Source of the DNA: Eutreptiella sp. 'Long Island Sound 2002'
Taxonomy: Eukaryota; Protista; Euglenida
Length of the DNA stretch: 64,000 bases
Assembly (NCBI GenBank): GCA_964036045.1
Contig: OZ038378.1
Location: 143,592,001-143,656,000, forward strand
Reading direction: 5' to 3'
A program made the translations under genes and the position numbers. How positions within the stretch are numbered: position 1 is the stretch's first letter; every line of letters starts with the position of its first letter. Of this stretch, positions 26,896 to 47,510 are shown piece by piece. The notes beneath the pieces were generated by a model. That model saw only the letters and a program-made list of their open reading frames with translations, ran no database searches and was not told the origin of the DNA.

Positions 26896-29555
26896 TGTGT
26901 TGGGGGAGGGGAGGGTGCAGCTCACACACACACACACACAGGCCGCTAGTCGCAGGCCTGCCAGCGAGGCCCCTGGACAAAGAACTCATGGTTTCGCTGA
27001 TGATGGGTAGGCGGTAGGAATGTTGAACCTCGCAGTTTGAGCTTTGATTGAATTATTTGGGCATCGCGCCCAGGCTGGTACAGGCCTCAGGCCTGCAGGC
27101 AGTGCTGCGCACACGGTCTGAGAGGGCGCTTCTGCCGCGGTGCGGGCGCCGTGCAACCGTTGGGTCTTTCTGGGGCCCCTCCGGTGATAATTGCCCCCAC
27201 CAAGAGGCCTCCAGGGAAAAACACACACTACCCAGAAGCCTTTGGGATGTATTGGCAACCAGAAAGAAACTTCCTCAGAAGACGGGTGGTGTGCATGTAA
27301 CTGAGGTTTTCTGGGGTTGTATGGGCTGTTTGGGTGGGGGGTACATCTTGGGATGGTGCACCGGTGTTTGACCACCAAATGGCTGCCACGGTGCGGGCGC
27401 GGCGCAACAACACCACTGAGCCCTGAAATGCAGGAGACCCACAGCTGCTGTGGCAGCCAGAACGGATATCAACCGAGCCCCCTTCCGCTGGAGGCCCTCG
27501 TCAAGGAGAGGCTTAGGCGCTCGATCTAGTGCTCCCTGTCTCTTTGGGGCCCCCTAACAGCTTGTGCCCGGGGACCCTGATCTGCTGGGGGCCTGCACCC
27601 ACCGGCCTCTGGAGATGAATGGAGCGCCTGACATGCACATGCCCCTGACCACGCTGACCCAGGCCGGCGTCCCTCCGACATATGATACCCCCCCTCTCCA
27701 CACACATGCACAGCAAGCCTGTCCACCTGGGCACTGTATGGGTGCGGAGGGGGTTGTTGCTCTTCTGCGATTGTGGCATCATCCCACTTCCCAATGAACT
27801 GGCGGTAGTGCGCAGGGCAAACACGCCCCCAATGTGTGCCATTGCCGCCCCATCACCGTGTCTATATGATCTGACCACTTACATAACCCCCAGGCCAAAC
27901 TCTCTGATGCCGTCCCTCCGGTGCCGCTGGAAGGTGCGTTTCATGTGCTTATCTTGCGGACCCGATACAGAGGCAGAAGGGACGCAGAGGCAGCCCCAGG
28001 GTTGCCCATGACACGCCAGCCCCACTGAGAGGTGGGGTTAGGGTTGGGCATGCGGGTTCCCGGACCCTCCACCCTCCTGTTCCGAGTGGGACTCTGGGTG
28101 TCATCCGACAGCATCGCAGTGGGTGCTCGGCACGGGCGTCATTCGGACAGCAGTGGAGACTGCGTGGGGCCGCCGCACAGCACTTCGAGGCCTGCGGCGC
28201 TGCGTTCACACCCAGAGTCACCCACAACACCGCCCGCTCACTGCCATCAGCCCCCGCCCGGACTGTCCTCTTCTGTTGCTTTCATCTTAACCAAGTGACC
28301 CGCTGCTGCTTGCCACGGAGTGCATTCCCCGACGCCGACAGCCTTTGTGTATGATGTATGGCAAGAGAAACCCACAGACCCGCAGCATTGAATTTGCATG
28401 GGTATGAACCCCGCATACGCCTGACACAGGGGATGCACGAGGGATGCCCCTTCTCGCCAGTCTTGTTCCTTTAGTGCCGCGGTGCTTTGCTTGTGGAAAC
28501 TTTGTTCGGGGGCGCATAAGCGAACCGGGACGTGGCTGCGGTGGACAAAGCGATACGGGCCACAAACCCCACCTTTGTTTTTTTTGCGCCCTCCACGGGC
28601 GACATAAATTTGCTGCACACATTTGCGTGGCCGAAGTTCTTCGTTTTTGTGGATCACGTGGCCCTGGTGGCACCCACTCGGCACGAACCCCCCCCCCCCC
28701 CATTGTTTTTCCCCGGGGGGGGGGGTCCGGGGGGGCCGTCACTTGGCCCAAAAAGCACAGCAATTTGAACATTGACATTACCCCCAATGCAACGGGGGAC
28801 TGGTCGTGGGGTGGGATGGGGTGAGACCTGAAACCATTTTTTTCTGGGGGGGGGGGGGGGGCGGGGGCGAGAGGTTGGTTCCAGACCTGCCACTAGCGTC
28901 TGCCAGCCCAGACATGATCAGATGGAGCAGGGTCCTACTGAGCCACATGCTGGACGCGGCACGTTCCTACTGAGTTCAGGTGGTGCGGGGGGCGGGTATT
29001 ACTGAGTCGCCGTTGATACGGGGCCAATTGTTACCCCCCCCCCCCCCCTTGTATAAGCCACGCCCTTGTCCAAGCTACAGTAGGTGTAGGGACCGTGATA
29101 ATTGTGTACGTAATTTGATTACGTACAAAATGTAGTGTGGCCATATAAGACATGGGTGTGTCGTCACATTTGCCAATTTCAGCACATGTGGCCCCCTGCT
29201 GGTGCACCAGGAATTTTTTTTTTTTGGTCTGATGCATCCCATAGGTCCTAAATTGCCAAGTTCAGCACATGTGGCCTACGCACGTGTGTGTCAGCAGTTG
29301 TATGTGTTCCGCGCAAGCCACCCCCTTGTCCAAGCTACAGTAGGTGTAGGGACCGTAATAATTGTGTACATTGGCGTAGCTTATATAAGGTGTTTTTGTT
29401 GCCCCTGCATGTGGTGACACTGCCACTGAGACTCTAAGACCCAGAATCTTACCGAAAGCAACAACTCTTGAATTACACAGGGCCCAGTGCCCTCGCTTCG
29501 CGCTCACACAGGCCTCTGGCCTCGCTGATACTGCCCTTGAGCGGGGCCATACAAC

Positions 29556-31577
29556 ATGTCGCCCATCGCGCTAGACGACAAAGCGCTACGAGGGCTGCGC
29601 GACATCATCCGCCAGGAGGTCCAGGCGGCCATGGGAGCGACCTCACGACAACAGTCCAGCGCAGCGGCTGGAGAGCGAAACACATCAACATCTGCAAAGA
29701 GCACCAGCAAAGGTGCCAGCCGATCACAAAACCCCACCCAATCCCAGGGGGCAACGGGATCCAAGGCCAGATCACAGTCCCCAGCCCGCCAGTCAACCAC
29801 TGGTGCAGGGAGCAAAACGGTACGAGAAGATCCCAAAGACAAGGAAATTCGGGAGCTCAAAGACATGATCAAAGAGCTCACTGCCACGATCAAGGAGCTT
29901 CGGGCCTCCATTCGACATCCCAAGAAGACTTCAGACAACGAAGATGCAGCGGAGCCAACCCAGCTGGCTCAACGGCCACGCACGTATGCGGACGCAGCGG
30001 CCAAGGGGAAATCCTCCTCAGTGCAAGTCACAGGAAAGCAGCCAGTCCAGTGCCTACACGGTAGTCAAAACGCGATCTGCTGTCAAAGTACTTGGCAAAC
30101 CAAAAGATGTGGGTGTGCCAGTGCAGCCAACGCATGGAGTAGCTGCGGAGGAGGCACGAAACTGGCAAGCCTCTGCCCTACTACCATTGCAACTCTGGAA
30201 AGAAGCCGAGAACAAACAACTTGGCCTTCCGGTGCTGAATCCCAACAAACCACCAGCCGAATGGAAAGTCTCAGAGAGACCAGGCACCTTCCAAAGGGTG
30301 CTCATGCTAGGGGGCACAGCAGACTCATGTGCGGAACTCGCAGACATGGCCTTCACGTCCCACCCTCAGGTAGAACACATGGCTGCCATCGTCAACGTGC
30401 CAAATACAGCCGGAGTCAAAAAGGCAACTGTCGCGGACGCACTACGACGCATGAGACTCTCGCGCGCCGATCTAGATGTTCAGGGCTGCTCGCTAACCCT
30501 GGCAACCCGAATCACGCGAGCCGAGTGGGTCCACTCCGAGGGTCCGCCCAGGCCCATAGCGGATCAGCAGCTATGGATGCAGTGGGAAAGGACCACAATG
30601 GAGCAAGACGACGAATCGGACCATCAGAATCAGACACGGCGGAGCATGCCCCAGTGGTGCCCTCGGAGAGGGAAAGTGGCTTCCACAAGATATCCTTGCA
30701 GATAGACCCTCTTATGTGCTCGGACTCCGAGCTACCTCCGAACAGAACCAAAGGCTCTGCGCAACGCTGGGTGAGGCAGCAAACGATGGAGTACTTGAAA
30801 ACGTGCATGCAAGAAATGACACAGGCTCCGCCAATGTCGATTTTCCGTCGAGCAGAACATTACTCAGTCACGATGGAGCTACCACTGGAAGCAGCCAAAA
30901 GGGTGCTCATTGGGTCGGGCAAGCTACAAGGCATCGAGGCAAGGCCATGGATGTCGAAAGGATCCCCTGGACCTGGACTGGAAGCACGCATTCTCTGGCT
31001 GAAAACACCCAACATGAAGAGCTCCAGCAGCATATGGGAGATCCTTCACTCCCAATACTGGTTTGCTGGTGTACTGACAGGAGACACTGTCGGCAGGTGG
31101 GGAATCCGAATATGGGGAACAGAAGAACCAAGCGAGCAGCAAAGGACAGGTATTGCAAACCTGCTTGGAGCAGAGGCCCCCTCCAAACGGACACGCATAC
31201 GGGTGTACGGATACCCGGCTGGTTTCGGCTATGGTACCACGTGGGCTCAAGAGGAGGCCGCACGTGTTTTTCCCTCAGGCAGGGTCCAAGTCCTTTCCTG
31301 CCAACACCTCGTCAACACGTCCATAACCAAGCCGGTCTTCGACATTACCGTAACAGGGGTGCCAACGGAATGGCAGGCGCACAAGCTGGAGTCCACCGAC
31401 ACCAGAGCAAACCCACGAATTTGGAGGCGGTGCGTATCGCACAAACTCCGACCAACGGCGGAAACAGTTGGACGCCAAGAGAGGCTACGTCTGGCCACAC
31501 GGGCGGGCGACGACCCAGAGACTACCTCTTTGCAAGACGTCGTGGAGGACAACCACGACATGGAGTTAGGACAATAA
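29556..31577 (+). CDS. Retrotransposon ORF1 (coiled coil, RTYADAAAKG, RRM-like C-terminal part)
   Basis: Coiled coil KDKEIRELKDMIKELTATIKELRASI, an ORF1-type YA motif, and RIRVYGYP / DITVTGVP strands. The segment at about 30040-30650 looks more protein-like in the overlapping frame 29944-30705, which implies compensating frame changes. Confidence 0.7.
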   Translation: MSPIALDDKALRGLRDIIRQEVQAAMGATSRQQSSAAAGERNTSTSAKSTSKGASRSQNPTQSQGATGSKARSQSPARQSTTGAGSKTVREDPKDKEIRELKDMIKELTATIKELRASIRHPKKTSDNEDAAEPTQLAQRPRTYADAAAKGKSSSVQVTGKQPVQCLHGSQNAICCQSTWQTKRCGCASAANAWSSCGGGTKLASLCPTTIATLERSREQTTWPSGAESQQTTSRMESLRETRHLPKGAHARGHSRLMCGTRRHGLHVPPSGRTHGCHRQRAKYSRSQKGNCRGRTTTHETLARRSRCSGLLANPGNPNHASRVGPLRGSAQAHSGSAAMDAVGKDHNGARRRIGPSESDTAEHAPVVPSERESGFHKISLQIDPLMCSDSELPPNRTKGSAQRWVRQQTMEYLKTCMQEMTQAPPMSIFRRAEHYSVTMELPLEAAKRVLIGSGKLQGIEARPWMSKGSPGPGLEARILWLKTPNMKSSSSIWEILHSQYWFAGVLTGDTVGRWGIRIWGTEEPSEQQRTGIANLLGAEAPSKRTRIRVYGYPAGFGYGTTWAQEEAARVFPSGRVQVLSCQHLVNTSITKPVFDITVTGVPTEWQAHKLESTDTRANPRIWRRCVSHKLRPTAETVGRQERLRLATRAGDDPETTSLQDVVEDNHDMELGQ

Positions 31578-31918
31578 AGCTGACCGCCCGGGTAGTGGCA
31601 TTGCTGCACCCAAGGACATGCACGAGCCGGTACAAACAGCCGCCGTGCTACGCGAGCCGGACACGTCCGCCGCGCAAGAAGTCTTCAGGATTCCTCTTGT
31701 GCATGCTGTGCCTTCTGCCATGGTGCTCTAACCATAAACAATTTCGCCGTACGCCAACCTTGAGCGCACGCAAGTGCCCCCCCACTGAGCTGACGAGAGA
31801 GGATGCAATGATAACCGCTCGGGCACGCAGCCCTGAAATGATGCTCCCCCTACCAGGGCTCTCACCACCCAGGACATGCAACTGCCGCATGGACTGCCTA
31901 TCCCTGATGACAGGTACT

Positions 31919-32815
31919 ATGTTCTCTTCCATGGGACGGTCGCACAAAAGGCGAAGGTCGGACTCCGGCAGCGAAGAAGGTGAACGCCAACATCAAAGGC
32001 GGCAGCAGCCGCAACAGCATAACCACATTAATGTCCACGTCCACCAGCCCCAACAGCGGCACCCAGATCGATCGAAACGCCGCAGTGCACACCGAGAACG
32101 ATGCAGGATTCAAGGCGAGACCAGACGGATGGAAAGCGCGCTGCGAGAGCTCGACGCCCAACAGGCAACTGAAATGAAAGCAGCCCGGGAGGAGCAGCAG
32201 TCGGCCGCGCGGTACACTGACAGGGCCCCTCTGATTCCGTTCCAGGCCAACCCGCCGAGACACAGGCCGCGGACACCAGGCTACGAGCAGGTGATGGCCC
32301 GCCCCCCTCTCCCCAGCTATGAGGAGGTAGTGGGGATGGCAGCAGACGAGGACGAAGCAGAGCATGGCCCCAGCAGACCTGGACTCGCCAACCCGTACTC
32401 CCTGCAGCAGCTGAGGAACATCTCGACAGCGGTGCAGATGCAACCGGAACGACCCACGGTGATCACCGACGTCCTGTACAAGACAGGCTCATACATAGCC
32501 TTGGCGCTGGAGCCCCATCTTGCGCTGCATCACCGCGATGACCGGGTCAACGACTGGGCCACGGATGTCGGACACCAGCTGGGCTTCAACGACGTGCCAG
32601 AGCCCGACACGGTCAAGCAAGGGACCCATGCGGCGCCACGAAACTGGAGGCTACGGCTGCGGGGAAAGAAGCCCCAGACTCACGTTCGGCATCAGCTCCA
32701 ACGCCAAATATGGAGTGTCCCAATACGCTTGGGCCTCGGGTGCGGAGTGGCTGATCAGCCGCATTCAAGCCCAAACAACAGCAGTGAGGCCGCAGTCACC
32801 ACCACCGGAGGATGA
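31919..32815 (+). CDS. Extra retrotransposon ORF (ORF-X): basic/Gln-His-rich N-terminus, short coiled coil, PY-like motifs
   Basis: ATG 31919/31931; MGRSHKRRRSDS..., RRMESALRELDAQQATEMKAAREEQQ, PGYEQ, PPLPSYEE. It lies inside the TSD-bounded element. Confidence 0.55.
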   Translation: MFSSMGRSHKRRRSDSGSEEGERQHQRRQQPQQHNHINVHVHQPQQRHPDRSKRRSAHRERCRIQGETRRMESALRELDAQQATEMKAAREEQQSAARYTDRAPLIPFQANPPRHRPRTPGYEQVMARPPLPSYEEVVGMAADEDEAEHGPSRPGLANPYSLQQLRNISTAVQMQPERPTVITDVLYKTGSYIALALEPHLALHHRDDRVNDWATDVGHQLGFNDVPEPDTVKQGTHAAPRNWRLRLRGKKPQTHVRHQLQRQIWSVPIRLGLGCGVADQPHSSPNNSSEAAVTTTGG

Positions 32816-35800
32816 CGATGCCCAGCCGCCGGCATACGCACCACGCCAAGAGTTTGTGGACCAGGTATGTGCTGACTATGCTTGGCAGGTGTCTGAACGT
32901 GCGGTCTCCTCAGCAAGTGCTGATACATGCAGATGCAGTATCCCCCTGCTCACACCAACTTGCCTTCTCTCTTCTAGTGGCTCGACCCAGAATGGAAGCT
33001 ACAGCGAGGCTACCGATACGGCAGATGACCGTGACCTGCAAATCTGTCAAGGCGCACCATCCCTGCTGCCCATGCACACTCTCAACCCTACCAGTGACCA
33101 GCAGGCCAGCAGAGCTGAGACGGAGAGCTCCGCTAGCCTCCCAGCTAAGCCGTACGCGAGACGGGAACGCCCGCCGCGTCTCAGTGCCGAGAGGCGGTCT
33201 GTGATGGCGAGCGCCGCCAGACTATTATGGACGAGTCGGGTAGGCCCGCCGCCCTTAGCAGTGGTGCCTGAAACACACCGCAATGCCAGTATTCACTGTC
33301 ACCGTTACCCCAGGACTTCTCTTCCTGAACCCCTTAGCCCGCCTAACCGCCTGGCCTACATTGTTCCTTTTAGCCTCCTGCTCCCGGATCAGCCAGATCA
33401 GAATCCCACCCTAACGCAGTCGGCCCACGAATTGGTACAGCCGGTGCCACCTGACCAGTGGGCCGCGCTGCATGTGCGCGCACACACACGCGCACCCACA
33501 CACCCACACTGGAAACGCGACCAGATCCTGCGTTGTGGTGACGTGCACCCCAATCCAGGACCCACCTCTCTAGCACTCATCAACGTGACGGCCCTGCGAG
33601 CACACCACCATGAAGTGTTGGGTTTGCAAGAGGACATCGTAGCACTCACGGAAACACGACTCACGCAAGGGGCCCAGAATGCAATGGCCTTCATGGTGAG
33701 ACAGAAGGGGTGGCAACCCTTTTGGGGAGCCCCCCTACTGTCCAAGACAGGCGGCATCTGGGGAGCCGCCCCAGGAGGGGCGGCCCTTCTGGTACGGGAA
33801 AAGTGGCCGGCAAAGCAAGCCCAGCGGGACCCGGGATGCACACTAAGTGAGGAAATGTGGAATTCAGGCAGGTGGCTGCACGTCATTGTGACCCCAGCGG
33901 ATGGCAAACGTCCCCTGAACGTGATTGTGGTGTACGGGATCCCAGGAGACCACAAGCTAAACGACAAGCTATGGGAAGCAGTACTGACCCAAGTTGCAAA
34001 GCTGGGGAACTCCCCCTTTCTGATAGCCACGGATGCCAATGTCCAACTAGATCACTACCGCTGCATGCCCAACCTCATGATGACGGAGCTGCTGTCGGGG
34101 CGCATTGTGGATGTCGACCTCTTGCATGCACGGACAACGGGACAAGACTGCCAGTGCTCGTACCACAATGGCTCAATCAAACAGAAACCAACCAGAATTG
34201 ATGGTATTCTAGCAGATGCCAAGACGGCCAGTGCCATCATGAAAGTCTCACCAACCGAAAGATGTCCCGTGCCTGGACACAAGCCGGTCACCTTCACCTT
34301 CAACTTCAAGCAGTCTGCCCAGAGGGTTCTGAAGTTTGTGCGGTTACCACCCATGATACCAGCCCATCTGCAGAAAAGCAAGCGTGACCAAATAGTGAAG
34401 GACGTCACAGAACCGTACGTGGCGATATGGGAGAAAGTCCTTGACAATGAGGCGTCCACGGCGGATCAACTGTGGGACCTCTGGACTTGGCTGGCTGAAG
34501 AAACCATGCTGGTCCTGACCATGGCACCGCCGCCGGCGGTCCGGACTGGAATATGCCAGTTACCACTGGCTCCCCAAGAGTTGCCGAGAGGACGGGGAAC
34601 CAAGAAGATGCTCAAGACAGTGGAGCTCACGCCGAAACGCATGACGTCGTCAGGTCTCCCGTGCACTGCACCAACCAAGGAGATGTCCGCCCTGCTGAGC
34701 GCCCTTGTGCCGGTGATGAAGTGGGCGGCAAGCAGGGAACAAGCCGCGGTCCCTGCTATGGGCCCCATACCGCGAGAGGTCCTCAGCAATTGGAAGGCAA
34801 TACGCAGGAGGGCCCACCGCATTCTTCAACTCATCTCCAAAGGGCAATGTGTTGCTGAGCACCAAGAATTACTGCGCACGGTGATGGAGGCTCCAGAAAA
34901 TGCGCCCATGACCATTACAGACCTGGTCCGGCTCAACGATAAGATTAAAATGCTGAGCAGGCGGCAACTAGCTCAAGAAGAGAAGAAGAGGCACCAAGAT
35001 TGGAGAGAATGGATTGAGGAGACCTGGACCACGTCGCCGGGGAAGGTGTACCAATGGATCAAGGAGGACAAGTACACGCCCGCTGTCCTGATCCAGAAAG
35101 ATGACGGCACCCTGACTGGCAATGTGCCCGAAATGGACCTCGTGATACATCAGAAATGGGACCCCATAATGAGGCAGCATGCGGATCCGACGCTGCCAGA
35201 GCCAGACACTGAGCCCTTCTGGCGCAGGTTTGGCAAGTATGTGGAGCATCACCGGATGGAATGCCAGCCCATCACCGCGGAGCGCCTCTGCCGCCAGTTC
35301 AAGGACATGAAACGCAGCCGGGCCACAGGGCTAGACGGCTGGACTGTCGTAGACATGCGGAACATGCCATGGCCGCTACTGCACATGCTGGCTCAGCTGT
35401 TGAACTGGGTTGAATCCCATGGTGTATGGCCTGAGCAACTTGCCACAGGGTACATTCAGCTGATCCCCAAAGGCGAGGGCAGTGAGCCACTACAGCTCAG
35501 GCCGCTGTCGGTGCTGTCCGCAATTTATGGCGCCTGGTCCGGTATCCGCCTCCGTGACTGCCTCGTCTGGCAAGAGAAGTGGGTGCACCGAAATGCATTT
35601 GCCTTCAGGCCGCAGAGGAGCGCCCTGGACGCAGCCACCCTACTAGCCGCCCTCATTGAGCGAGCACACCTACTGAGGCAGGCATTATCTGGCGCTGGCA
35701 CTGACTACGTGAAGTGTTTTGATTTGATACCACAGCAAATCTGTTTCCGGATGGCACGAGAGTTCGGCCTGGACCCCAAACCGCAGGCGGCATTGGAGGC

Positions 35801-37073
35801 CATGTATCAACAATTACACAGGGCGTTCAAAATAAATGGGGCATTGGGCTCCTTCTTTCACGCCACGAACGGCGTGCTGCAAGGGTGCGCCATGAGCGTA
35901 CTCATGATCAACATGCTCACCACAGTCTGGATGCGCGCCGTGGACGAGCTGGAAGGAGCCATCTCAGTGACGGTGCGCAGCCTGCCGCCCATACCGCCCA
36001 AGCTGGAAGAGCCCAAGGAGCTGAGGTACAGACGTAAACCCTCCCAGCCCACCACGGTGTCACGCCATCGGCCACCACCGGCCCCAGGCAGGTGTGTCAT
36101 GAAGACCTTCGGCTCGGGGATTGACCAATTTGAATATTGGGAACACTTCAACCCTTGCACATGTGGCCATGGACCCCCACCTCAGCAACCGCAGCCGCCA
36201 CATCCCTCCTCCGCACCCATGCCCGCATGCGATGGACTGGCGGAAGAGGAGATGGCAGCATCGGAGGAGTCCCCACCCCCCAGCCCAGCAAAGCTGAGGG
36301 GTGCTCAACCCCAGCCACAAGAGGCGGGCACGATCCATGTCGGGTCCATGGGCTATGCAGATGACACGTACCCGCTGCGATCCGAGGGCCAATACATGGC
36401 GCCGGTGATGAAGCTCACTGATGAGTGGCTGGCTCTTACCTTGCAAAAAGTGAACCCCAAGAAGTCATTGTCCATACAAGTACGACAATCCAAGGAAATT
36501 GCGCGCAAACACACGGTTCTCCAGGGGATCTCACTCCCCCTCCAAGCTGAATTTCGCTCGCTGGGGGTGGGTATTCGTACCAGCCTGACCAGAGGGACGG
36601 GCCCGCTCCTGAAAAAGAGGATATCCAAGGGGAAACACCTGCTATCCAGAGTGAGGGGTGCACAAGGGGGCTTCAGCCGGCGAACACACATCATTGCCAC
36701 TCTGGTACAAGCCGCAGCCCTATGGGGTACCCCGGGGGCGGAGGTGTCCCGGAGGGATCTACAGAGCTTGGAGACGGCAGTGCTCCACAGTCTGTGGGGC
36801 ACCTCGAGGCCTGGTAGGGCGAAGGAGGTCATCTTCGTGCTGCTAGTACAGGGACACCGAGTGTCTCCTCTCATGAAAATCACGTATGACAGGATGTGTT
36901 GGCTCCTCGCGGTGGCACGCACGCCAGGCCGTGCTACAAGGTGGTGTGCTTACCAAGTGCTCCTCCCTAGTCCCACTGGGAGCCCCCACAGTGGTGGGTG
37001 TGTCTGCGAGACCGTATTTCACACGGCGCCCGGACATGCTAAAACTCCTACAAAACCTGCAAGAGTACTGTGA
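32520..37073 (+). CDS. Retrotransposon pol ORF: 2A-like peptide, AP endonuclease, reverse transcriptase
   Basis: APE: INVTAL, LTETRL, GGAALLV, VVYG, ATDANV, TRIDGIL, PGHKPV. RT: ATGLDGW, LIPKG, LRPLSVL, AFRPQRS, DYVKCFD, LQGCAMS, GYADDT, KVNPKKS, SLGV. The true start is uncertain. Confidence 0.93.
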   Translation: MRCITAMTGSTTGPRMSDTSWASTTCQSPTRSSKGPMRRHETGGYGCGERSPRLTFGISSNAKYGVSQYAWASGAEWLISRIQAQTTAVRPQSPPPEDDDAQPPAYAPRQEFVDQVCADYAWQVSERAVSSASADTCRCSIPLLTPTCLLSSSGSTQNGSYSEATDTADDRDLQICQGAPSLLPMHTLNPTSDQQASRAETESSASLPAKPYARRERPPRLSAERRSVMASAARLLWTSRVGPPPLAVVPETHRNASIHCHRYPRTSLPEPLSPPNRLAYIVPFSLLLPDQPDQNPTLTQSAHELVQPVPPDQWAALHVRAHTRAPTHPHWKRDQILRCGDVHPNPGPTSLALINVTALRAHHHEVLGLQEDIVALTETRLTQGAQNAMAFMVRQKGWQPFWGAPLLSKTGGIWGAAPGGAALLVREKWPAKQAQRDPGCTLSEEMWNSGRWLHVIVTPADGKRPLNVIVVYGIPGDHKLNDKLWEAVLTQVAKLGNSPFLIATDANVQLDHYRCMPNLMMTELLSGRIVDVDLLHARTTGQDCQCSYHNGSIKQKPTRIDGILADAKTASAIMKVSPTERCPVPGHKPVTFTFNFKQSAQRVLKFVRLPPMIPAHLQKSKRDQIVKDVTEPYVAIWEKVLDNEASTADQLWDLWTWLAEETMLVLTMAPPPAVRTGICQLPLAPQELPRGRGTKKMLKTVELTPKRMTSSGLPCTAPTKEMSALLSALVPVMKWAASREQAAVPAMGPIPREVLSNWKAIRRRAHRILQLISKGQCVAEHQELLRTVMEAPENAPMTITDLVRLNDKIKMLSRRQLAQEEKKRHQDWREWIEETWTTSPGKVYQWIKEDKYTPAVLIQKDDGTLTGNVPEMDLVIHQKWDPIMRQHADPTLPEPDTEPFWRRFGKYVEHHRMECQPITAERLCRQFKDMKRSRATGLDGWTVVDMRNMPWPLLHMLAQLLNWVESHGVWPEQLATGYIQLIPKGEGSEPLQLRPLSVLSAIYGAWSGIRLRDCLVWQEKWVHRNAFAFRPQRSALDAATLLAALIERAHLLRQALSGAGTDYVKCFDLIPQQICFRMAREFGLDPKPQAALEAMYQQLHRAFKINGALGSFFHATNGVLQGCAMSVLMINMLTTVWMRAVDELEGAISVTVRSLPPIPPKLEEPKELRYRRKPSQPTTVSRHRPPPAPGRCVMKTFGSGIDQFEYWEHFNPCTCGHGPPPQQPQPPHPSSAPMPACDGLAEEEMAASEESPPPSPAKLRGAQPQPQEAGTIHVGSMGYADDTYPLRSEGQYMAPVMKLTDEWLALTLQKVNPKKSLSIQVRQSKEIARKHTVLQGISLPLQAEFRSLGVGIRTSLTRGTGPLLKKRISKGKHLLSRVRGAQGGFSRRTHIIATLVQAAALWGTPGAEVSRRDLQSLETAVLHSLWGTSRPGRAKEVIFVLLVQGHRVSPLMKITYDRMCWLLAVARTPGRATRWCAYQVLLPSPTGSPHSGGCVCETVFHTAPGHAKTPTKPARVL
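33516..33563 (+). other. 2A-like (StopGo) peptide RDQILRCGDVHPNPGP immediately upstream of APE
   Basis: Matches DxExNPGP except E->H. This position before APE is where 2A-like sequences are known in non-LTR elements such as L1Tc. Confidence 0.75.
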
Positions 37074-38886
37074 GCTGCGCTGGACGGCTGTGCTACAGGC
37101 ACCGCCCCCCTCACCGGACACCAGGCGGAGGAATGCCCAGCGGGCCAAGGAACGGCAAGAGGCGAAGGAGTCCAGCCCCAGCATCAGGGAGCGCATTCCC
37201 AAGCTCAAATACACATCGTCGCTGCTGCCTGCTATGCACACCCCCAGGCATCTCACTGGCAGAGGAGGAGGTAAGAAGAGTGCCACTCTGTTTGCGGCTG
37301 ACTACTTCCCAGCACACCGCCACCCTAGGGCTCCCCCCACGCGGCCCTACCGGCTGCTCCGACCTGCCAAGCAGGCGGCCCCGCCTCAACCTGATGTGGC
37401 TGCAGTGGGCTCGAGTCACCAGGCGGCCCTGCCGGCGGGGCGAGCGGCAGCGCCCAGCGATCTGTCTCAGCGAGTAGATGCGCTAACGCCCCCAGATGCG
37501 CCTCTAGGTTGGGCCCCGCCGTCGTCGTCACCTCCAGTGCAGGTGGAGTACACCTCGGAGGAAGGGCCCTCTACCCCGGAGGTCTTCTCCTCGTCGTCCT
37601 CATGGGAATCTGAGCCCAACAACAACGGGGGGCACTATCGACGAGCAGCGATGGGGCCCAGGTGCGGCCCCGCACGGTCCCCACTGCCACACGCAGTGCC
37701 CCGCACGCGCGCTCCCAGGGCCCGATCCGTTCACCGGTCAGGGAACCCGGCGCCGAGGAAGACACGGCGTAGGGTGCCTCCCGCGCGGGCGCCCCGAGGG
37801 ATCAAAAGGCGGCAGTCCATCACGGAAGGGCGGGGGAGCCCACGACGCAAGCGACCCCAACTGCAGCAAGGGGATGAGCAGTCACATACGGCCCTGGAGG
37901 CCCCAGGCCGTCACAGGGGCCCAGCTGGAGCTCCCCTCCCCATGTCCAGGCACACGCTCTCATACCTACAGCTCACAGGAGCTATCACTCGGGCGTCACG
38001 CATAGTGGTGGTGAGCACCCCAGAGGGGCAGCGCACCCCACTACCGACACGGAGCCCGGTGCAGCCTCCAAACGAAAGGGGACGCGACATTCCCCCGGGA
38101 ATAGCACGGATGCTACAGCAGATCAGAGTGCCTCACGCCAGGCCACAACCGCTGCCGCCCCAAAGGGAAACACGGCCCAGCGCGCGGACTTCACGCGCCG
38201 CCGTCCTGCCCACCGGCCCTCGGATGGGGTTCGATAGCATTTGCACCCCGTCTCCGCGGGTGCTGAGTAGGCCAGGGCAATTCTCGCCATCTCCGGCATG
38301 GTCACCGGCGGTGACTTCCAGTTGGCACTCAGTGCGGCACATGTCCCCAGAACATTGGTCGCCCGCGTGCACACCAGGGGGGGGGTCTAACCGACAGCAG
38401 GATCCACCTCACCTGCCCCCCATCCCGCTGGCGCCCCTATTTGAGAGCGCCATGTCTACCCCGCGAAGGAACAGCACTCAGAGTGCGTCTGATGAGGACG
38501 TGCAACAATATGCAGTCCAGTATTCTGCCCCCCCCGAACTGCCCCCCACCCTGCTGGCGCCACTTTTTGAGAGCGTGATGTCTGCCCCACGAGTGGGCAG
38601 CACTCATCGGGAGTGCGATGAGGACATGGGTCAGTACGAAGTCCAGTACTCTACCCCACCCTCCGGGGGGGAATGGCCCCCTAACCCCTTTACCTTTCCC
38701 TCTCCACGCGGAGCACAGCGGCTCTGCACGGAATTGCCTGGCATGGCCCGACAGGGCCAGGGGTGGGTTCGTGATCCCCATGCACGACACTCCACCATGC
38801 TGTACAGCATGCAGGAGGGTGACCTGTCTTCCAACAGCGCGGATGGGCTCATGAAGCATGGACGGGCCTCACGTGAGGTGACCTAA
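36886..38886 (+). CDS. Frame-shifted continuation of pol: about 600 aa Pro/Ser/Arg-rich tail with a 42-aa duplication
   Basis: Open frame overlapping the end of the RT ORF. A 126-bp direct repeat at 38404/38530 encodes PP.LPP..LAPLFES.MS.PR..ST...DED..QY.VQYS. Confidence 0.55.
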   Translation: MTGCVGSSRWHARQAVLQGGVLTKCSSLVPLGAPTVVGVSARPYFTRRPDMLKLLQNLQEYCELRWTAVLQAPPPSPDTRRRNAQRAKERQEAKESSPSIRERIPKLKYTSSLLPAMHTPRHLTGRGGGKKSATLFAADYFPAHRHPRAPPTRPYRLLRPAKQAAPPQPDVAAVGSSHQAALPAGRAAAPSDLSQRVDALTPPDAPLGWAPPSSSPPVQVEYTSEEGPSTPEVFSSSSSWESEPNNNGGHYRRAAMGPRCGPARSPLPHAVPRTRAPRARSVHRSGNPAPRKTRRRVPPARAPRGIKRRQSITEGRGSPRRKRPQLQQGDEQSHTALEAPGRHRGPAGAPLPMSRHTLSYLQLTGAITRASRIVVVSTPEGQRTPLPTRSPVQPPNERGRDIPPGIARMLQQIRVPHARPQPLPPQRETRPSARTSRAAVLPTGPRMGFDSICTPSPRVLSRPGQFSPSPAWSPAVTSSWHSVRHMSPEHWSPACTPGGGSNRQQDPPHLPPIPLAPLFESAMSTPRRNSTQSASDEDVQQYAVQYSAPPELPPTLLAPLFESVMSAPRVGSTHRECDEDMGQYEVQYSTPPSGGEWPPNPFTFPSPRGAQRLCTELPGMARQGQGWVRDPHARHSTMLYSMQEGDLSSNSADGLMKHGRASREVT

Positions 38887-39228
38887 AGGCCGGAGGGAGG
38901 AGCCTCTTGTCATACAGGGCGGCAGCTCTCCAGGCACCCGCGCGACTTGCCCCTTGGGTGAGTCTGGGAGCTGGAATGGGTAGAAGCCCCATGGACTATT
39001 GCTCCTTAATATGATTTCCTTCCTTGGCGTAGCTTATATAAGGGGGGGGGGGGTACTGAAAACCAGTTGCCCTGCCGGACGCTAGGGGCATGCCCGGTTC
39101 GTTCTAAAGGGCTTGCAGTGCGGTATGGCGAGATCCTGCCGTCATCAGGGCCGTCGCCAGCGCCCAGCTGCTGCCCGTGGGAGACGCAGGGACACAAAGG
39201 AGGTGTACGGGGATGCAGGGTCGTCAAG

Positions 39229-40826
39229 GGGGGCGTACCGTGCGCTGTGCACGCGCTGTGCACGCGCTGTGCGAAAAGTTGGCTGTTCTCCACCACTGGG
39301 AGTTCGGTAAGTTCAGAAGATTGAAAGGACGTCATTGAATGGCTGCTGCAGTGGACGGGGCTATAGGGGGCAGAATTTAGGTCCCTGGGACCCATGGCAA
39401 GCATCAGATGTTTGAATTTTTGAGTTTTGAATTGATTGTGCATGATTCCGCAGGTGGGTGGTTTTCAGGGTTGTTACCTGGATAATCACCGTAACAATTG
39501 GCGCTGTGCGCGCGCTGTGCGAAAACGCCCCCCCAAGCTACAGTACGCGTAGGGACCGTAATAATTGTGTACATTGGCGTAGCTTATACAAGGGGGGGGG
39601 GGTAGAGCAATGAAGAGGAAGAACGCTATTACAGAGCCACGGCTGAGAAAAATCCACGGAGACACAAAAGCTGCGGTTCATCGCTTGCGTAGAGAGGGCG
39701 GTGAAGCATCAGATACTCGGCTCACGTCCAAGCCCGTGGCACCGGCATACAACCATCGCTTGAATCTCAAGACAGTGCAGGTCAATGCGTGCCACTTCAT
39801 CATCTGCTATGCACACAGCCCCTCCGTTTGAGCAGGCACCCATTGTCTGCGCTTGAACTGCTACCGTTGTCCATATGGAGAGGGAGAGAGACGTAGAAGG
39901 GGGGGGGGGGGGGTGATCGTGAGGCCACTGGGGGACTATCCGCACCATGTGCACTGTGGCAAGGCTCGGAAGTAAACCCGCCATCCCTACCAATCTGCGG
40001 AATGGTCTGTTCTGTCCTGGTCCGCATCCTCCGGCAAGTTCCCATACATATCACAAGTGTTGTGTGTTGTGCGGACGATCTGCTGTTCTAAATTCCAGTC
40101 CCACCAGTACAGGCACAGCCCCTCCTACACCACATTCGCTGTGCCATCCATCAATGTGGATGCCATTTTGGGCGCCAAATGAACTTGCACAAACCTGCCT
40201 TCCTCCTCAAAGGTTTCCCAAGCCTCGCCAGACCAGCTCACTGTCGCCTTGGTCCAGGCGCCATGCACAGAAAATCACCTCGCAGAAAGATTGAGGGCAG
40301 GCATGAGCATTTCAAACACAACAATACCCCTATCCCCCCCAATATTTTATAAAACCCAAAATACCCCACACACGCAACACCTGCACTGCAGATCATCCTT
40401 ACACAAGTCACCCCACGGGCCAAAAAGATGAAACCCAATATCTATGAACATGATTTCCACACACCCATTGCTCCAAGAATGCTCGATTTCTCATTTTTCA
40501 CCACACTGGGGGCGTACCGTGCGCTGTGCGCGCGCTGTGCGAAAAGTTGGCTGTTCTCCACCACCGGGAGTTCGGTAAGTTCAGAAGATTGAAAGGACGT
40601 CATTGAATGGCTGCTGCAGTGGACGGGGCTATAGGGGGCAGAATTTAGGTCCCTGGGACCCATGGCAAGCATCAGATGTTTGAATTTTTGAGTTTTGAAT
40701 TGATTGTGCATGATTCCGCAGGTGGGTGGTTTTCAGGGTTGTTACCTGGATAATCACCGTAACAATTGGCGCTGTGCCCGCGCTGTGCCCGTGCTGTGCG
40801 CGCGCTGTGCGAAAACGCCCCCCAAG
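39229..40826. repeat. Two near-identical copies of an interspersed repeat of about 310 bp (39229-39536 and 40508-40826)
   Basis: Direct comparison. The second copy is flanked by a 35-bp direct repeat (40473-40507 / 40822-40856, 2 mismatches). Confidence 0.85.
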
Positions 40827-42840
40827 AATGCTCGATTTCTCATTTTCCGCCACACTGTCTCCCGACTCGGGTATGGTTCCCCATGGAACATCACACGCCC
40901 TGTGGCAGGAACTGGGCCAGACAGCTGATGCCAGACAGCCCTCTGACCAGTGCCGGCAGCTCCTGCAGCTGCTCCACGGACTGCTTGTGTGACGCCCACA
41001 GCACAACCTCTGTCCACAGCTGAACTCGATCTCCCCCCCCCCCCCCCCACAACCTTCAATGCCTGCCGAGAAGCACAAGCCAAGCCGTAGGATTACCGAC
41101 GGTGTATCTGAGCTCACACATATACTACACACACAAAATAGACTAGGACCTCAGTGACTGTATGGCCGAATGAGTGCTGGTTTTACCAACAGAAATTCAG
41201 TAGGACAGTGGTACAGCATGCAGACAGTGAGTGTGTTTTAGGGCCGTCAACACCCGCATCACGCCGGCAACAGAATCAGAAAGGCTATGCGCCCACCAGG
41301 TACCGTATAAGCTATCCGACTGATGTCCATAGTGAAATGCCGCCCGTACATAGCAATTTTCAATGACATTTGAACCGTTGCAGTGGAATCATGATGGCGT
41401 CCAATATTTTACTTTTGGCCTGCCCAACCCCCTGACTAGGTGCCCCATTTTTTGAGCAGGGGGTGGGGGGGTGGGGGGACATTTTTTTGACCTTGGATTT
41501 CGGATTCTTTGGACATTGAACATATGTGGGGCTTGCTTGGGCCATGTGGCAGGGAAATTGAACTAATCAAAATGGATTTTTAGATCCGTTCACCCCCCCC
41601 CCCCCCAATGGTCAAAAGTAGCATCCAAATGGGAAGAAAAAGTGTCGCATAGCACTGGAAGGGGTATCCCAAATTCCAGACCGAGCGGCCTCGGGTGTCA
41701 TCGGCCCTGGATCTCAGGGAATGCCATGCACGCAGTGTGAACGCAGTGCAAAGTTTTGTACATTGGTCACTACCCGAATCCTAGTTTTGGTACTTTTGCG
41801 GAGGTTTGTTGTTCCATAATAGGGTTTTTTAAGCTTCTTATGCATTCGGTAGCCCTTCTTGATTGGATTATGCTTTGGCTTTCAAAAAAAACTAATTGGA
41901 TGGTGCTCTTTGTGGTGCTCTACTTTGACTGTGTGGTTTATGTGGCCTTGGTTTCCGTCATAAAATCATTTTGGAACCTTAAAACCTGCAGTGGTTTTCT
42001 GATTGGAACTACTCACCAACTTGCATTGGAGCTCCACATCTTTGTAGTTGCATGCCATCGCGTAGTTGTACTCTACAACGCTAATTGAGATGTTCATAGG
42101 TTCCCAAGCACAGTCTTGAGTACTCTTTGAACTTCTGGAGTCAGTCAAAAAAAAATAATTGAGATGTTCATAGGTACATCAAAGTACGCCGACCCGGAAT
42201 GCTTTTGTACCGACTTTGAGTGCATCCTGTGAGGTGAGGGACTGGTACCACAACTATGAAACCTGGGGCCTTCCTAGGTGTTGAGGTGGTCAGCAATTGA
42301 GCTTTCCGAAATGTGTCTGCTTGCACTGCGGCTACTCATTGCAAACCCAGGGCTGGATGGGTCCCAGGCTTGGGGGTTTGCAGGAGGGTCTCTTTGAGGA
42401 ACCCCCCGTGTCCAACTAAGACCTTGCCCAGCGAACACTTCCGTTCGAACTTGTGTTTGCGAGCGGTGCGAGCAAATAAAAGTTTTCGAACAGTATGTAT
42501 CTAGTTGTATTGTATTTCAGTTGCAATTTGTTGCCGGGCCACCCTGGTCCAACAGGCCAGCCCGGACACAGACGAGACTGTACGGCGATTGCTGAAAACT
42601 GTAATTCTGGGGACCTAATTAATTGGGACCCGGTGTGTGATGGTGCGTTTGATCAGGCTCTCCTGTGCCATGCCCCCGTTGCCGTCCCTTGCATCAGATC
42701 TTCTGCATGTCCATCGCAGTCAACACGGCGGGCAGCAGTGCAGCGTACAGGCCCACCACTGGCCCCTGCAGGAGTCTTTCCCCGGGACACACAGCAATCG
42801 CCAGCCCTTAACTACCCGCGGCACCTCAGAGCCTCTGAAC

Positions 42841-43074
42841 ATGGTCTCCCCCCAAATCATTTGGCCCCTGGTGCGCCTCGATGGCTCCGGTCGCATGTGC
42901 ATCGAGCTCTCCGTCGTTGCCGCTGCCGCCTTTGCGGCCGGCATGGCCCTGTGGGGCATCGCCCAGCACCTGCGGTGTTTTGTCTGGCCAGAAATGCAGA
43001 AGTACTACGTTCGGATCCTCGCGTTCATCCCCATAAGTTGCCTGGCCTGCACCCTGTCATTTCTGTACCCGCAG
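42841..43074 (+). CDS. OST-alpha/TMEM184 family transporter, exon 1
   Basis: TM helix, then QHL....PEMQKYYVRILAFIPI...LSFLYPQ, the family N-terminal motif. Donor CAG|GT at 43075, phase 0. Confidence 0.8.
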
Positions 43075-45907
43075 GTGTCTGTGCCAACTGCAACGGAATG
43101 CTGCGTGGGTGGCTGCACCTTTGGAAATGCAGGGAGGGGCATGGGGGTGCAGGGAGGTGCAGGGAGGTCAAGGAGTGCAGCCTGTCCGCATTCCAGACGC
43201 ATGTGGAGACAGGGCCGCTGACCACCCCGGCGCCACATAGGGACGTGATAGGCCACGGCTGTCCTGATGAGACAGCGTGTGCGTCCCGTGCCCCAATGTC
43301 AGTGCGGAGATACGGGCACGAGGGCTTTTGCAGGCGTCATCATTGGGGCCCCGATGGCCGCGCCAAGTGCCATACCCAAGCGGTCGTCCGCTAGCGGGGG
43401 CGGGGCCTTCTGCCGCCCGCCGCCCGCGCGAGGTCCTGTGCACCCTGGTGCGCCTGGCGCCTCCCCGGGCGAAGGGCGTAGAGACCCCCCCCAAGGGCCA
43501 CCAGCCGTTTTATTGATCCTGGTTGTTCTTTAGAGTCGGCAGAAAGGACAAGCACCCGCAGAGCTAACCGCAAAAAACGCCTCACTGTACTTTACATAGT
43601 GGAGCACCCCAACCAAGAAGGGGACACGTGCATTGATTGGACTTCGCAGTACTGCTGGACTAATGGCTGGAATTGTCTATGGCGGGGACATTCAGTCTAT
43701 CGGAACCGACCATTGATCCCCCCCCAGCCGTGTCCCAGGCACCGTGCAGGCGGCAGCCGCGTCCGGCGCCCCGAGATCCTGCCGTCATCAGGGCCGTAGC
43801 CAGCGCCCAGCTGCTGCCCGTGGGAGACGCAGGGACACAAAGGAGGTGTACAGGGATGCAGGGTCGTCAAGGAGGTGCAGGGAGGGTGATGGGGGTGCAG
43901 GGCAGGGCTTCGCTTGAAGGGGAGGGGGGGCGATCGGGGCAATTCCAGAGCGGTTGCAGAGCGGTCACAGGGGATGTGAAAGCGGTTGGGGGTTGGGCGG
44001 TTACTGGCGGTTGGAAATGCGGTTGGGGCTCTGGTGTTGGGGTGTGGGAATGTGAATCAGGGCCGGAGTGTTGGGGGGGCAACCCCCCCCCCTTTCAAGC
44101 GATGCCCTGGTGCAGGGAGGTGATCGAGGTACAGGTGGTTGGTGTTTGGTGTGGAGGCGCCCAGCCTTTGCCAATGGGACCCTTGTCGGCACGTCCTCCC
44201 GGGGTAGAGTGCAAGGAAGCAGTGCAGCCCTCTGGCCCAGTTGGCGACGAAATGAGCGCTGGTTCCTGGTTGCGGGGCTGGGGTGAGGGCAGGGGGGCTG
44301 CCTGCACTCCGTGCACCTCCTTGACTTGGCGGCCCAAAAATTGCTTTGCGGGGGGGGGGATGGCATGGGCGCCCGGCGAAGGAGAGGGGGGGGGGGTGTT
44401 CCAGAAATGGGCATCCGTGCCGGGCCCTTTGTTTTGTGTAAGGACGGATGTTGCCACCAAAGGCGCCGGAACACAAATTTTGGCCCGGAAAATTTTTTTC
44501 ACGAAAAAATTTTCCCCCACATATGTGTAGTCAAAATGATCAGCGCGACGTGGGGATCATTTTGAGCCATGTATGTTGGGGTCGCCCCCCCCCCCCCCCC
44601 CGGCACGGCAGGTAGGGCAGCGCCAGCCCAAACCCCCCTCCGGGCACGGCAACCAAGGAGGGGGAGTGGGGGCGGTTGGGCAAATGGGCTTCCGTGCCAT
44701 CCCCCCTCTGCAAAGCAATTTTCTTCCCGCCCTGCCTGCACTCTTGCACCTCCTTGACTTCCCACAGTCTCCCTAACCCTCCCTACACCTCCCTCACCTC
44801 GTTGTCAAGGATGTGTAAGGAGGGGTGGGGAGATGCATGGAGGCCAAGGAGGTGCAGGGGCGGGGGGTGTAGGGGGTTGCAGGGACACGGTGTAGGAGGT
44901 GCAGGGAGTGGTAGGGAGATCAAAGAGGTGCGGCAAGGGTTACGGACATGTAGGGAGGTTAAGGAGGTGCGGCGTGGACAGGGAGGTGCGGGGGGGTCAA
45001 GGTTTTGGAAGGTTTTCTTTACTTTCTTTATTTTTCGATCATTGGGTTCGCTTCTTCCTGGTGTTGCCTTCACATCAAAGGTGTGGCTGGCACCGGGCAG
45101 CGTACTCTGTAGTGTCGTCAGGAGAAGACATTGTCCTCTCTCGTTGTGATGGGTGGGACTAAAGATGCCCCCCCCCCCGTGTTCAACGAACGCCTTGTCC
45201 CACGAACACTTCTGTTCAGACCGTATTGTTTTGGTACCTGAATTAATTGGGAACCAAATTGGGTTAATTGATTAATTCGGTAAAGAACGGCGTGTCCAAC
45301 GCACACTCCTGTTCGGACCGCTTTTTTTTTGGATTTTATTGTTCGCTGGACATGGGGGGGGGGATTGTGATACGATGTGATACTATGTTCACTGCAAGCA
45401 ACAAAAACAAGAGGTCATGAGGTCCAGTTGCAGGGAGGGGTAGGGAGACGTTGGGAGGCCGGGGGGCGTGCAGGATGGGGGTAGGGAGATGCAAGGAGGT
45501 CAAGGACGTGCAGGAAGGGGATGGGGAAGGGAGGTGTAGGGAGGTGAAGGGGCAGGGAGTGGTATGGCGATGCCGGGCAGTTCAGGAGGTGCACGGAGGT
45601 GCACAGAGGTCAAGGAGGTGGAGGGAGGGGGTGGGAGGGGTACGGAGGTGCGGGGTGCTCAAGGAGGTGCAGGGAAGAGTGGAGAGATGCAGCGATGTCA
45701 ACGAGGGGCAGGCAGGGGTAGGGGGGGGGGTGAGGAGGTGCAGGGAGGCCAAGAAGGTACAGGGAGGGGGGGGGGCGGGGAGATGCAGAGAGGTCAAGGA
45801 GGTGCAAGGAGGGGTAGGGGCATGCGGGGACGCCAAGGGGGCGCACCGTGCCCTGTGCGTGCGCTGTGCGAAAAGTCGGCTGTTTTCCACCACCGGTAGC
45901 CCCGGCT

Positions 45908-46295
45908 CCCAGGGTTCTGAATCCTGCATCCTACAGCCCCTGCTGGTACACCAGTGCTTGCCACGGGTCCCAGGATCCTGAATCCTGCACCCTACAGCCC
46001 CTGCTGGTACACCAGTGCCTGCCACGGGTCCCAGGGTTCTGAATCCTGCATCCTACAGCCCCTGCTGGTACACCAGTGCTTGCCACGGGTCCCAGGGTCC
46101 TGAATCCTGCACCCTACAGCCCCTGCTGGTACACCAGTGCCTGCCACGGGTCCCAGGGTCCTGAATCCTGCACCCTACAGCCCCTGCTGGTACACCAGTG
46201 CCTGCCACGGGTCCCAGGGTCCTGAATCCTGCACCCTACAGCCCCTGCTGGTACACCAGTGCCTGCCACGGGTCCCAGGGTCCTGAATCCTGCAC
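45908..46295. repeat. 61-bp minisatellite, about 6.3 copies, in intron 1 of the TMEM184-like gene
   Basis: Unit CCCAGGGTCCTGAATCCTGCACCCTACAGCCCCTGCTGGTACACCAGTGCCTGCCACGGGT; no spacers. Confidence 0.92.
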
Positions 46296-46555
46296 CCCCG
46301 ATGCTGTTTTGAATGGATCATGCACGCTTCTGTAGGGGGGTGCTTTGCAGGGGTGTTCCCGGGATAAACACCGTAACGATTGGCGCTGTGCGAAAACGCC
46401 TCCCAAGGAAAGGAGGTGCAGGGAGGGGTACGGAGTTACAGACAGCAACCCCCGCCACGCCGTTGCCCGGTGCCCCCCTGACGCCCCCCCCCTCACCCCT
46501 GCCGCCGCCTTGCCTCCTCTTCCACGCCCCCTTCCGGCCCTTCCCGGCCTCCCAG

Positions 46556-46767
46556 GCCGCCAGCACCTTCGAGCTTCTGAACGCCGCCTACGAGCCCGTG
46601 GCGTTCCACTCGTTCTTCGAGATCATGGTCGTGTACCTCCGCCGGGGCGACATGGCCTCGCACCTCCACACGCCGCGGGGGCTGCGGCGGCACTTGCTTT
46701 GCATCCCCGTCCCCTGCCTGGGGACGTACGCGGACGGCATGCAGGCGCTGGAGGCGTACGAGTGGAG
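46556..46767 (+). CDS. OST-alpha/TMEM184 family transporter, exon 2
   Basis: A polypyrimidine tract plus AG at 46554-55; AASTFELLNAAYEPVAFHSFFEIMVVYL...; donor AG|GT at 46768, phase 2. Confidence 0.8.
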
Positions 46768-47510
46768 GTGCTGCCGCGCCCGCCCGCCGCGCGCCTCGGC
46801 CCTCCACCCCAAAAGCGCCGCCAGCGGCGCAGCAGCGGAGGCGGAGGCCGGGCCCTCCAAAGCGCGTGCCACGGGGGACCGGGGGGGGGGGGGAGGGGGC
46901 GCGTGGACGGCCGTGGGGCGCATGCGACGGCCCGGCGATCCACCGGAGGACCGGGGGAGGGCACCAACGGGCGATGGGTGGGGGACGGCCCTTTGGTACT
47001 GCGGTCCTGCGATGACCTGCGGCCTGAACTCTCATGTGCGGATGGCGGGGGGTGTGTCCGGCGAGGGGGTCGTCCGCTCCGGACACGCGGGCGGCGCGGC
47101 AAAGGCCCGCGGCCCCTGAGAGGCATGGCCCCGCGGTGTTTGCGGGGCAGTGACCCCCCCCCCCCCTCCCCCCCCCCGACAGCCAGCCTCAGCCCCGCGA
47201 CCGACGGCCGCTGTGGTTTGGCACAATGGGCCGCGGTGCAAAGCCCGCGGCGTCTTTGGATTCCTCTCGTTGCTTCTTCGGTTGGTCACATGAACCCCCT
47301 GCGGCGGCCGGCGGCAGTGCAGGGCCGTCGTGGTGCAGGGCGGCGGGGAAAGGACAGCGTTTGTACGCCGGGCAGGTACACTGCTGTGCGCCGCGGGTGG
47401 GGTCTGCATTCAGCACAACACCGTGCCACACTGCGCCATACCGCACTGCAAGCCCTTTAGAACGAACGGGGCATGCCCCTAGCGTCCGGCAGGGCAACTG
47501 GTTTTCAGTA

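Follow-up and report, generated by a model that had tools for sequence, protein, structure and literature searches.

A 2A peptide in front of the apurinic/apyrimidinic endonuclease (APE) has been published for the L1Tc/Ingi elements and for metazoan long interspersed nuclear elements (LINEs) (PMC3708506, PMC3894237). The C-terminal motif of 2A, D(V/I)ExNPG|P, is located in frame between two products (PMC3894237). L1Tc has a single open reading frame (ORF) with an N-terminal 2A, an RNase H and C2H2 fingers, a 5' end resembling the Pr77/hepatitis delta virus (HDV) ribozyme and a poly-A tail (PMC5814959). For the metazoan LINEs it was proposed that 2A controls the output of the ORF2 protein (Odon et al. 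2013; Luke et al. 2013; PMC3708506, PMC3894237), and according to the published pattern an N-terminal 2A goes along with the loss of ORF1 (PMC3708506, PMC3894237, PMC5814959). Here we describe a LINE from the euglenid Eutreptiella sp. 'Long Island Sound 2002', which was found in a stretch of 64,000 nucleotides (assembly GCA_964036045.1, contig OZ038378.1, positions 143,592,001 to 143,656,000 of the forward strand; hereafter the window) and which bears on the long-standing question of how ORF2 of a LINE is translated from a bicistronic RNA. With a probability of roughly 0.8 we regard the element as a defective copy of an abundant APE-type family with two ORFs, which has been damaged by private deletions, and in whose intact members the ORF2 frame is free of stops across ORF1, would be entered near the 5' end and would release its enzyme by 2A.

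The family was searched at the DNA level in the genome assembly (2.28 Gb), which yielded at least 1413 first-look candidates, and more than 1000 related copies are present in the genome. Scored copies are 93-98% identical, and full copies match the window copy over its whole length apart from gaps. For comparison, ten further copies were put together from retrieved sequence pieces and aligned with the window copy (11 in all); all statements on reading frames are based on these natural copies and not on a consensus. According to the alignment, intact members of the family carry two ORFs. ORF1 extends from element position 166 to 2187 and encodes 674 amino acids (aa), and the second ORF, of about 3516 codons, lies in the -1 frame relative to ORF1 and is open from element position 48 to ~10595. 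This second frame comprises 3516, 3528, 3447 and 3350 aa in four copies, one of which also has an intact ORF1. It runs over the 5' untranslated region (UTR) and ORF1 with 713 codons, followed by a leader of ~660 aa (termed ORF-X in the initial annotation of the window), the 2A-like peptide, the APE, a linker, the reverse transcriptase (RT), a CCHC knuckle, a conserved domain of ~300 aa and a low-complexity tail of ~500 aa. Full copies are 10.71-10.74 kb long; one subfamily has 285 additional in-frame bp and reaches 11.01 kb.

With L1Tc and ingi this family shares the euglenozoan host, the in-frame 2A directly upstream of the APE with the RT behind it and the flanking target-site duplications (TSDs) (PMC5814959, PMC3894237). 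In contrast to these elements it has a separate ORF1 under constraint, its 2A is located ~1370 codons into the frame, its finger is of the CCHC and not of the C2H2 type, and RNase H, an Rfam ribozyme match and poly-A are absent. The metazoan 2A LINEs likewise carry 2A before the APE in ORF2, but the family described here has retained its ORF1, and its 2A is preceded by a long leader; the family contradicts the published association of 2A with ORF1 loss (PMC3894237). Like L1-type elements it has two ORFs, a coiled-coil-like N-terminus of ORF1 and an ORF2 composed of APE, RT and a CX2CX8HX4C knuckle. Unlike them it is devoid of poly-A and possesses 2A, the ~660-aa leader, an insert of ~125 aa in the RT, the ~300-aa domain behind the CCHC knuckle, the ~500-aa tail and an ORF2 frame that stretches across all of ORF1. 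In L1, the two ORFs are separated by a short spacer. The leader, the insert in the RT palm and the tail are large lineage-specific additions to the enzyme of a LINE.

The initial annotation had described the window copy as a young, full-length non-LTR (long terminal repeat) retrotransposon with a multi-ORF architecture and without a CCHC finger. Comparison with the 10 other copies revealed four private deletions, of 2 bp (~30024), 1 bp (~30626), 2 bp (~32676) and 1073 bp (~36926), and further gaps comprise a private in-frame one of 6 bp and another of 6 bp that is shared with four copies. The letters missing at the three small deletions are present in contigs of other public sequencing runs. 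ORF1 of the window copy is a chimera: its residues 1-157 and 358-673 are 96-97% identical to the ORF1 of the family and stood as annotated, but residues 156-357 are 89% identical to the -1-frame translation of the family. Because the other open frame of the family is read between the first two deletions, ORF1 nevertheless remains open. The division into ORF-X, ORF2 and tail results from the frame shifts at the ~32676 deletion and at the 1073-bp deletion. Through the latter the copy has lost the end of the RT thumb, the CCHC knuckle and the greater part of the conserved C-terminal domain, and the missing kilobase contains the motif CPYC...H....C with a weak match to zf-RVT (7.9e-6).

The window copy is a defective deletion derivative, and its four-ORF layout and its missing zinc finger are artefacts of private lesions, that is, damage and not design. 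It is accordingly very improbable that the copy represents an undescribed clade as a full-length, intact LINE with four separately translated ORFs and truly without a zinc finger. The four frames of the window are open and overlap one another and the TSD is perfect, as would be expected for such an element, but each change of frame coincides with a private deletion whose bases occur in the 10 other copies and, for the three small ones, in the contigs of other runs as well; moreover, all parts are joined in one frame in four copies, and the CCHC knuckle, invariant in the group, belongs to the deleted piece. The assignment to non-LTR retrotransposons and the young age were retained from the annotation, whereas full length was not, 1073 bp being missing in comparison with 10 of 10 other copies. 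Private substitutions amount to 0.69%, none of them is a nonsense substitution, and the nearest relative is 97.8% identical. On account of the perfect TSD, the few private substitutions and the lack of nonsense substitutions we consider the insertion fairly recent: the copy is dead, but not old.

Across the 674 codons of ORF1, the -1 frame of intact copies contains no stop codon. Shuffling of codon order or of synonymous codons gave an expectation of 16.5-18 stops, with a minimum of 6 in 2000 shuffles, and the +1 frame contains 17-23. Each third of ORF1 is depleted of -1-frame stops on its own (P <= 0.004), and the depletion includes the sequence preceding the first AUG of this frame, which is located at position 873 or ~940 in most copies and, depending on the copy, not before element position 324-942. 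Of 71 ORF1 codons ending in T, 32 are followed by a codon starting with GC, GG or GT and nine by one starting with AC or AT, but none by one starting with AA, AG or GA. The latter constitute 24% of the ORF1 codons (162), and 0 of the 162 follow a T-ending codon (Fisher P 1.4e-9). The -1 frame is thus free of stops because T-ending codons are specifically avoided before AA, AG and GA codons. In the searched part of the overlap, 55 of 75 scored genomic copies have no -1-frame stop; for ORF1 itself the number is similar, 42 of 66. The amino acids of the -1 frame are 85-88% identical, those that the same DNA encodes as ORF1 95-97%, and dN/dS (the ratio of nonsynonymous to synonymous substitution rates) of the -1 frame exceeds 1, as is expected where ORF1 dominates the constraint. 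The avoidance of stops is kept across subfamilies that are 5-7% apart. In a sister family from Euglena (L044, see below) 21 and 19 stops were counted in the two alternative frames of ORF1, near expectation. From these statistically clear patterns we conclude that the ORF2 frame is held open by selection, beginning close to the 5' end.

Several copies provide information on the 5' end of the RNA. In two of them the element starts with ACTTTCTGAGTGTCTATTTTTTTTCG (with a single mismatch in one case) joined directly to GGTGTTTTTG; ACTTTCTGAGTGTCTATTTTTTTTCG is given in papers as the spliced leader of Euglena gracilis and E. longa, which by itself would point to a Euglena as the host. These spliced-leader-headed copies, with the complete 26-nt leader, are located at C12:257423-257452 (-) and C19:20573234-20573263 (-) (see L036:1500-1545), and a genome-wide search for the junction of spliced leader and element returned those two copies and one doubtful third match. 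The leader is absent from all nine other copies whose 5' junction was read. In the C12 copy it is situated inside the 12-bp TSD, and therefore a trans-spliced RNA was reverse-transcribed.

For the translation of ORF2 we propose the following course. The ORF1 protein would coat the RNA, and ribosomes would gain access to the ORF2 frame at the 5' end or close to it. Our leading guess for this entry is non-AUG initiation at a conserved CUG just upstream of the ORF1 AUG; 9-11 of the 11 copies have kept the CUG codons at element positions 126, 135 and 141, and those at 135 and 141 are found in all of them. As a second guess, ribosomes could leave ORF1 by a -1 slip, either early or distributed. Ribosomes would then read the ORF1 region in the second frame and pass through ORF-X, until skipping at 2A releases APE and RT from a leader of ~1370 aa. 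Since the 2A skip would free the enzyme, this leader need only be open and its sequence would hardly matter; if so, selection keeps an overlap of 2 kb free of stops without conserving its amino acids. That the enzyme is indeed made by this undescribed route, in which the ORF1 region is re-read after non-AUG entry or slips and the leader is discarded by 2A, is a tentative proposal to which we give somewhat less than even odds.

Several observations weigh against the interpretation as a whole. ORF1 is without a canonical slippery heptamer (X_XXY_YYZ, Y = A or U) and without a homopolymer of at least 6. The one early site of the form X_XXY_YYZ is A_AAC_CCC at element position 339, which is conserved in 10 of 11 copies and belongs to the non-canonical slippery type; as a site of -1 frameshifting it was rejected, the downstream RNA fold being no better than shuffles (z -0.44). 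The 2A-like sequence GDVHPNPGP carries H where the consensus has E, and skipping is a prediction from the sequence. The comparison with described clades is based on domain layout and sequence matches. Support at the RNA level is weak, as sequences of the family are present only in contigs of metatranscriptome libraries, which may contain DNA. Finally, in 6 of 17 loci the ORF1 stop has the form UAAUG, which would permit termination-reinitiation without any open overlap.

This last point leads to the explanation that ORF2 is translated solely by termination-reinitiation at UAAUG, or from a separate trans-spliced message starting near the ORF1 stop, and that the overlap is a relic or by-product. 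Coupling by UAAUG of the SART1 type is known for LINEs. In one subfamily the ORF1 stop reads TAATG and its ATG belongs to the ORF2 frame, one further locus has TGATG, and the use of a spliced leader by the family is demonstrated by the two copies mentioned above. However, the majority variant is TAAAG (UAAAG in 10 of 17 loci, including the copy with both ORFs intact), and coupling at the stop leaves 2 kb of stop-free overlap unexplained. The -1 frame avoids stops in a specific manner and strongly so in all three thirds of ORF1, and the avoidance is maintained among subfamilies differing by 5-7%, which makes this explanation unlikely in our opinion, and entry into the ORF2 frame near the 5' end is preferred.

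All 11 copies compared contain ORF-X, the RT insert and the tail, which hold as features of the family and are not private to the window copy, so that this refuting condition of the annotation is not borne out. In two copies with a fully open giant frame, the other two frames of ORF-X and tail contain 12-23 stops each, and together with the dN/dS values computed between subfamilies (Table 1) this identifies ORF-X, insert and tail as coding parts of the family, which evolve under purifying selection. A composite or nested element, in which ORF-X or the tail represents foreign DNA (another repeat or a 3' transduction) inside the TSD, is still less probable than an intact four-ORF element. Such an origin was suggested by the first genome search, which matched other copies over positions 1-7538 only, and by the fact that neither ORF-X nor the tail gave a Pfam match or any other database match. 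The break at 7538, however, is the deletion of the window copy itself, and nine of the 10 other copies extend across the tail and finish at the same 3' end. Moreover, an individual TSD is present in all nine examined full copies whose 5' end is not truncated, and ORF-X and tail are open in the ORF2 frame only, with dN/dS below 1. Within ORF-X, an insert of 285 bp (95 codons) unlike the rest of the element was observed at element position ~2389 in the copies at C8:49378272 and C12:12224206, in both of which the giant frame is open over 3447-3528 codons.

Membership of the family in the APE-type non-LTR retrotransposons is indicated by a predicted endonuclease of the EEP (endonuclease/exonuclease/phosphatase) fold N-terminal to a LINE-type RT, by TSDs flanking an insertion without terminal repeats and by 5'-truncated copies, which start at element positions 96, 415, 497, 670, 1607 and 2651. 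The 2A-like peptide QILRCGDVHPNPGP was found as annotated and is followed directly by the APE. PF03372 is matched by 21 of 21 aligned APE members, and the APE profile matches exonuclease III (3.4e-11), APE1 and the L1 endonuclease (3.8e-7); the catalytic columns N, E, D, N, D and H are conserved. The annotated PGH in place of SDH is present, but it is not distinctive for this element, since the last APE motif reads PxH or similar throughout the group and only the H is kept. Of the solved structures, human L1 ORF2p is the best match of the RT. The large internal insertion of the RT was corroborated as well: 158 residues separate QG from YADD, compared with 29-34 in 23 of the 24 aligned relatives and 41 in the closest one. 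Across 25 aligned sequences the CCHC knuckle CX2CX8HX4C is invariant. The domain behind it comprises ~300 aa (intact copy L034:3927-4830), contains the motifs W..L.W and ELA.DFE and is conserved in euglenid and diplonemid LINEs. Its predicted model (pLDDT ~90) is mainly helical and had no match at E <= 2 in a Foldseek search of the PDB; VIA-align Z scores reached at most 6.4, and only the first 100 residues weakly resemble the R2 linker. The absence of RNase H noted in the annotation was borne out, as no Pfam RNase_H or RVT_3 match was obtained in the family and no structural RNase H match in the post-CCHC domain; three to four relatives have an RNase H further downstream. For ORF1 there was neither a Pfam nor an Atlas match, and a word-based search returned proteins of the same family only.

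A HMMER search against 1.8 billion representatives yielded 6234 proteins at E <= 0.001. The named top matches are all diplonemid transcripts, from Flectonema neradi, Rhynchopus euleeides, Diplonema japonicum and Eupelagonema oceanica; further families from Euglena are 45-49% identical, and APE-RT identity within the group is 25-49%. The nearest named proteins outside Euglenozoa are L1-like RTs of plants, and no trypanosome protein was among the results of the homology search. In many relatives a 2A-like motif directly precedes the APE, mostly 6-100 residues from the N-terminus. 2A followed by the APE, PxH for SDH and the CCHC knuckle are common to a euglenid and diplonemid group of LINEs, including relatives from all four of these diplonemid species, as is the conserved domain behind the knuckle. 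The family described here differs from the group in its RT insert, which occurs in 0 of 24 aligned relatives, and in the position of 2A, which is near the N-terminus in most of them. This is a first outline of the group, of which no description was found in the literature searched. The remark of the annotation that it knew of no described LINE clade with the combination applies in part: 2A-APE, PxH and CCHC are shared with relatives, whereas leader, insert and tail are family features. The sister family from Euglena (L044; ENA assembly, 7165-13552) is 29% identical in ORF1 and ~40% in ORF2. Its ORF1 is followed by two in-frame stops within 12 codons and then by the APE, and it is without ORF-X, 2A, RT insert and open overlap. 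In a distant relative (P0041, 1991 aa, ENA) the APE is preceded by an OTU cysteine protease domain and the CCHC knuckle is followed by an RNase H; add-ons at both ends therefore vary within this LINE group.

Table 1. Features of the window copy, with window coordinates; dN/dS refers to the family.
Feature	Position	Strand	dN/dS	Basis or remark
Left TSD	29371..29390	.		Identical to 39024-39043; last two G possibly element
Defective LINE copy, 9633 bp	29391..39023	+		100% self match; intact members ~10.72 kb
Upstream ORF of 3 codons (ATG TGG TGA) in 5' UTR, ORF1 frame	29409..29417	+		ATG at element position 19 in 7/7 copies listed
ORF1, 673 aa here, coiled-coil-like N-terminal segment	29556..31577	+	0.10-0.14	Frame chimera
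Private 2-bp deletion, ORF1 exits frame	30023..30025	+		Absent in 10 other copies; other-run contigs carry AA
Private 1-bp deletion, ORF1 re-enters frame	30625..30627	+		Copy alignment; other-run contigs
ORF-X, the ORF2 leader from ORF1 stop to 2A	31578..33521	+	0.56-0.60; patches 0.21; one stretch ~1	Open frame in C14, C8, C4 and C12b; 21-23 stops in each other frame
Private 2-bp deletion splitting ORF-X from ORF2	32675..32677	+		Copy alignment; other-run contigs
2A/StopGo-like peptide	33522..33563	+		Identical in 11/11 copies
APE (EEP-fold) endonuclease, PGH at 34269-34277	33564..34330	+	0.06-0.12	Pfam Exo_endo_phos E 2.9e-4 (sub-threshold)
RT, C-terminal end cut by deletion	35460..36929	+	0.06-0.17	RVT_1 1.4e-9; L1 ORF2p 1.1e-7; R2 1.9e-5
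Family-specific RT insert, ~125 aa	~35940-36320	+	0.15-0.36	QG-YADD spacing
Junction of 1073-bp private deletion, frame shifted	36926..36930	+		1073 bp present in 10/10 other copies
Post-RT part			0.09-0.17	
Remaining end of post-CCHC domain	36930..37387	+	0.10-0.15 up to element position ~9090	Match to intact copy
Low-complexity Pro/Ser/Arg-rich ORF2 tail incl. stop codon	37388..38886	+	0.33-0.49	Nine other copies reach 3' end
3' UTR ending TTCC	38887..39023	+		Sequence end; no poly-A, no tandem repeat
Right TSD	39024..39043	.		Match to left 20-mer

The element ends in TTCC without an A-run in all copies, in agreement with the annotated lack of a poly-A tail. Folding of the 3' UTR was not better than that of shuffles (z -0.96), the 5' UTR gave z -1.05, and an Rfam search for a 5' ribozyme at 29300-29800 (E <= 10) returned only a chance match to a small nucleolar RNA, although a divergent ribozyme could escape such a search.

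The 20-mer TTGGCGTAGCTTATATAAGG flanks the insertion in identical form on both sides, and no chance occurrence of it is expected in the window. Both copies carry a T variant, whereas the ends of the repeat at 39574-39593 (+) and 47522-47541 (-) read C. In addition, an uninterrupted paralogue exists at 39561-39602, in which the left flank passes straight into the G-run found after the right TSD. The insertion is real, because the TSD is identical on both sides and this paralogue reconstructs the empty site; they show that the end of a repeat resembling a miniature inverted-repeat transposable element (MITE) was the target and that the copy entered by target-primed reverse transcription. In other copies, GG precedes TGTTTTTG yet stays outside their TSDs. 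As the two G at 29389-29390 may be bases of the element, the annotated boundaries stand apart from these two bases, and the TSD has a length of 18-20 bp and not of exactly 20 bp. Eight of the nine full copies have TSDs of 16-19 bp, and the spliced-leader-headed C12 copy has the one of 12 bp. A second copy of the MITE-like repeat, at 39574-47541 of the window, is seemingly interrupted by ~8 kb at nearly the same site.

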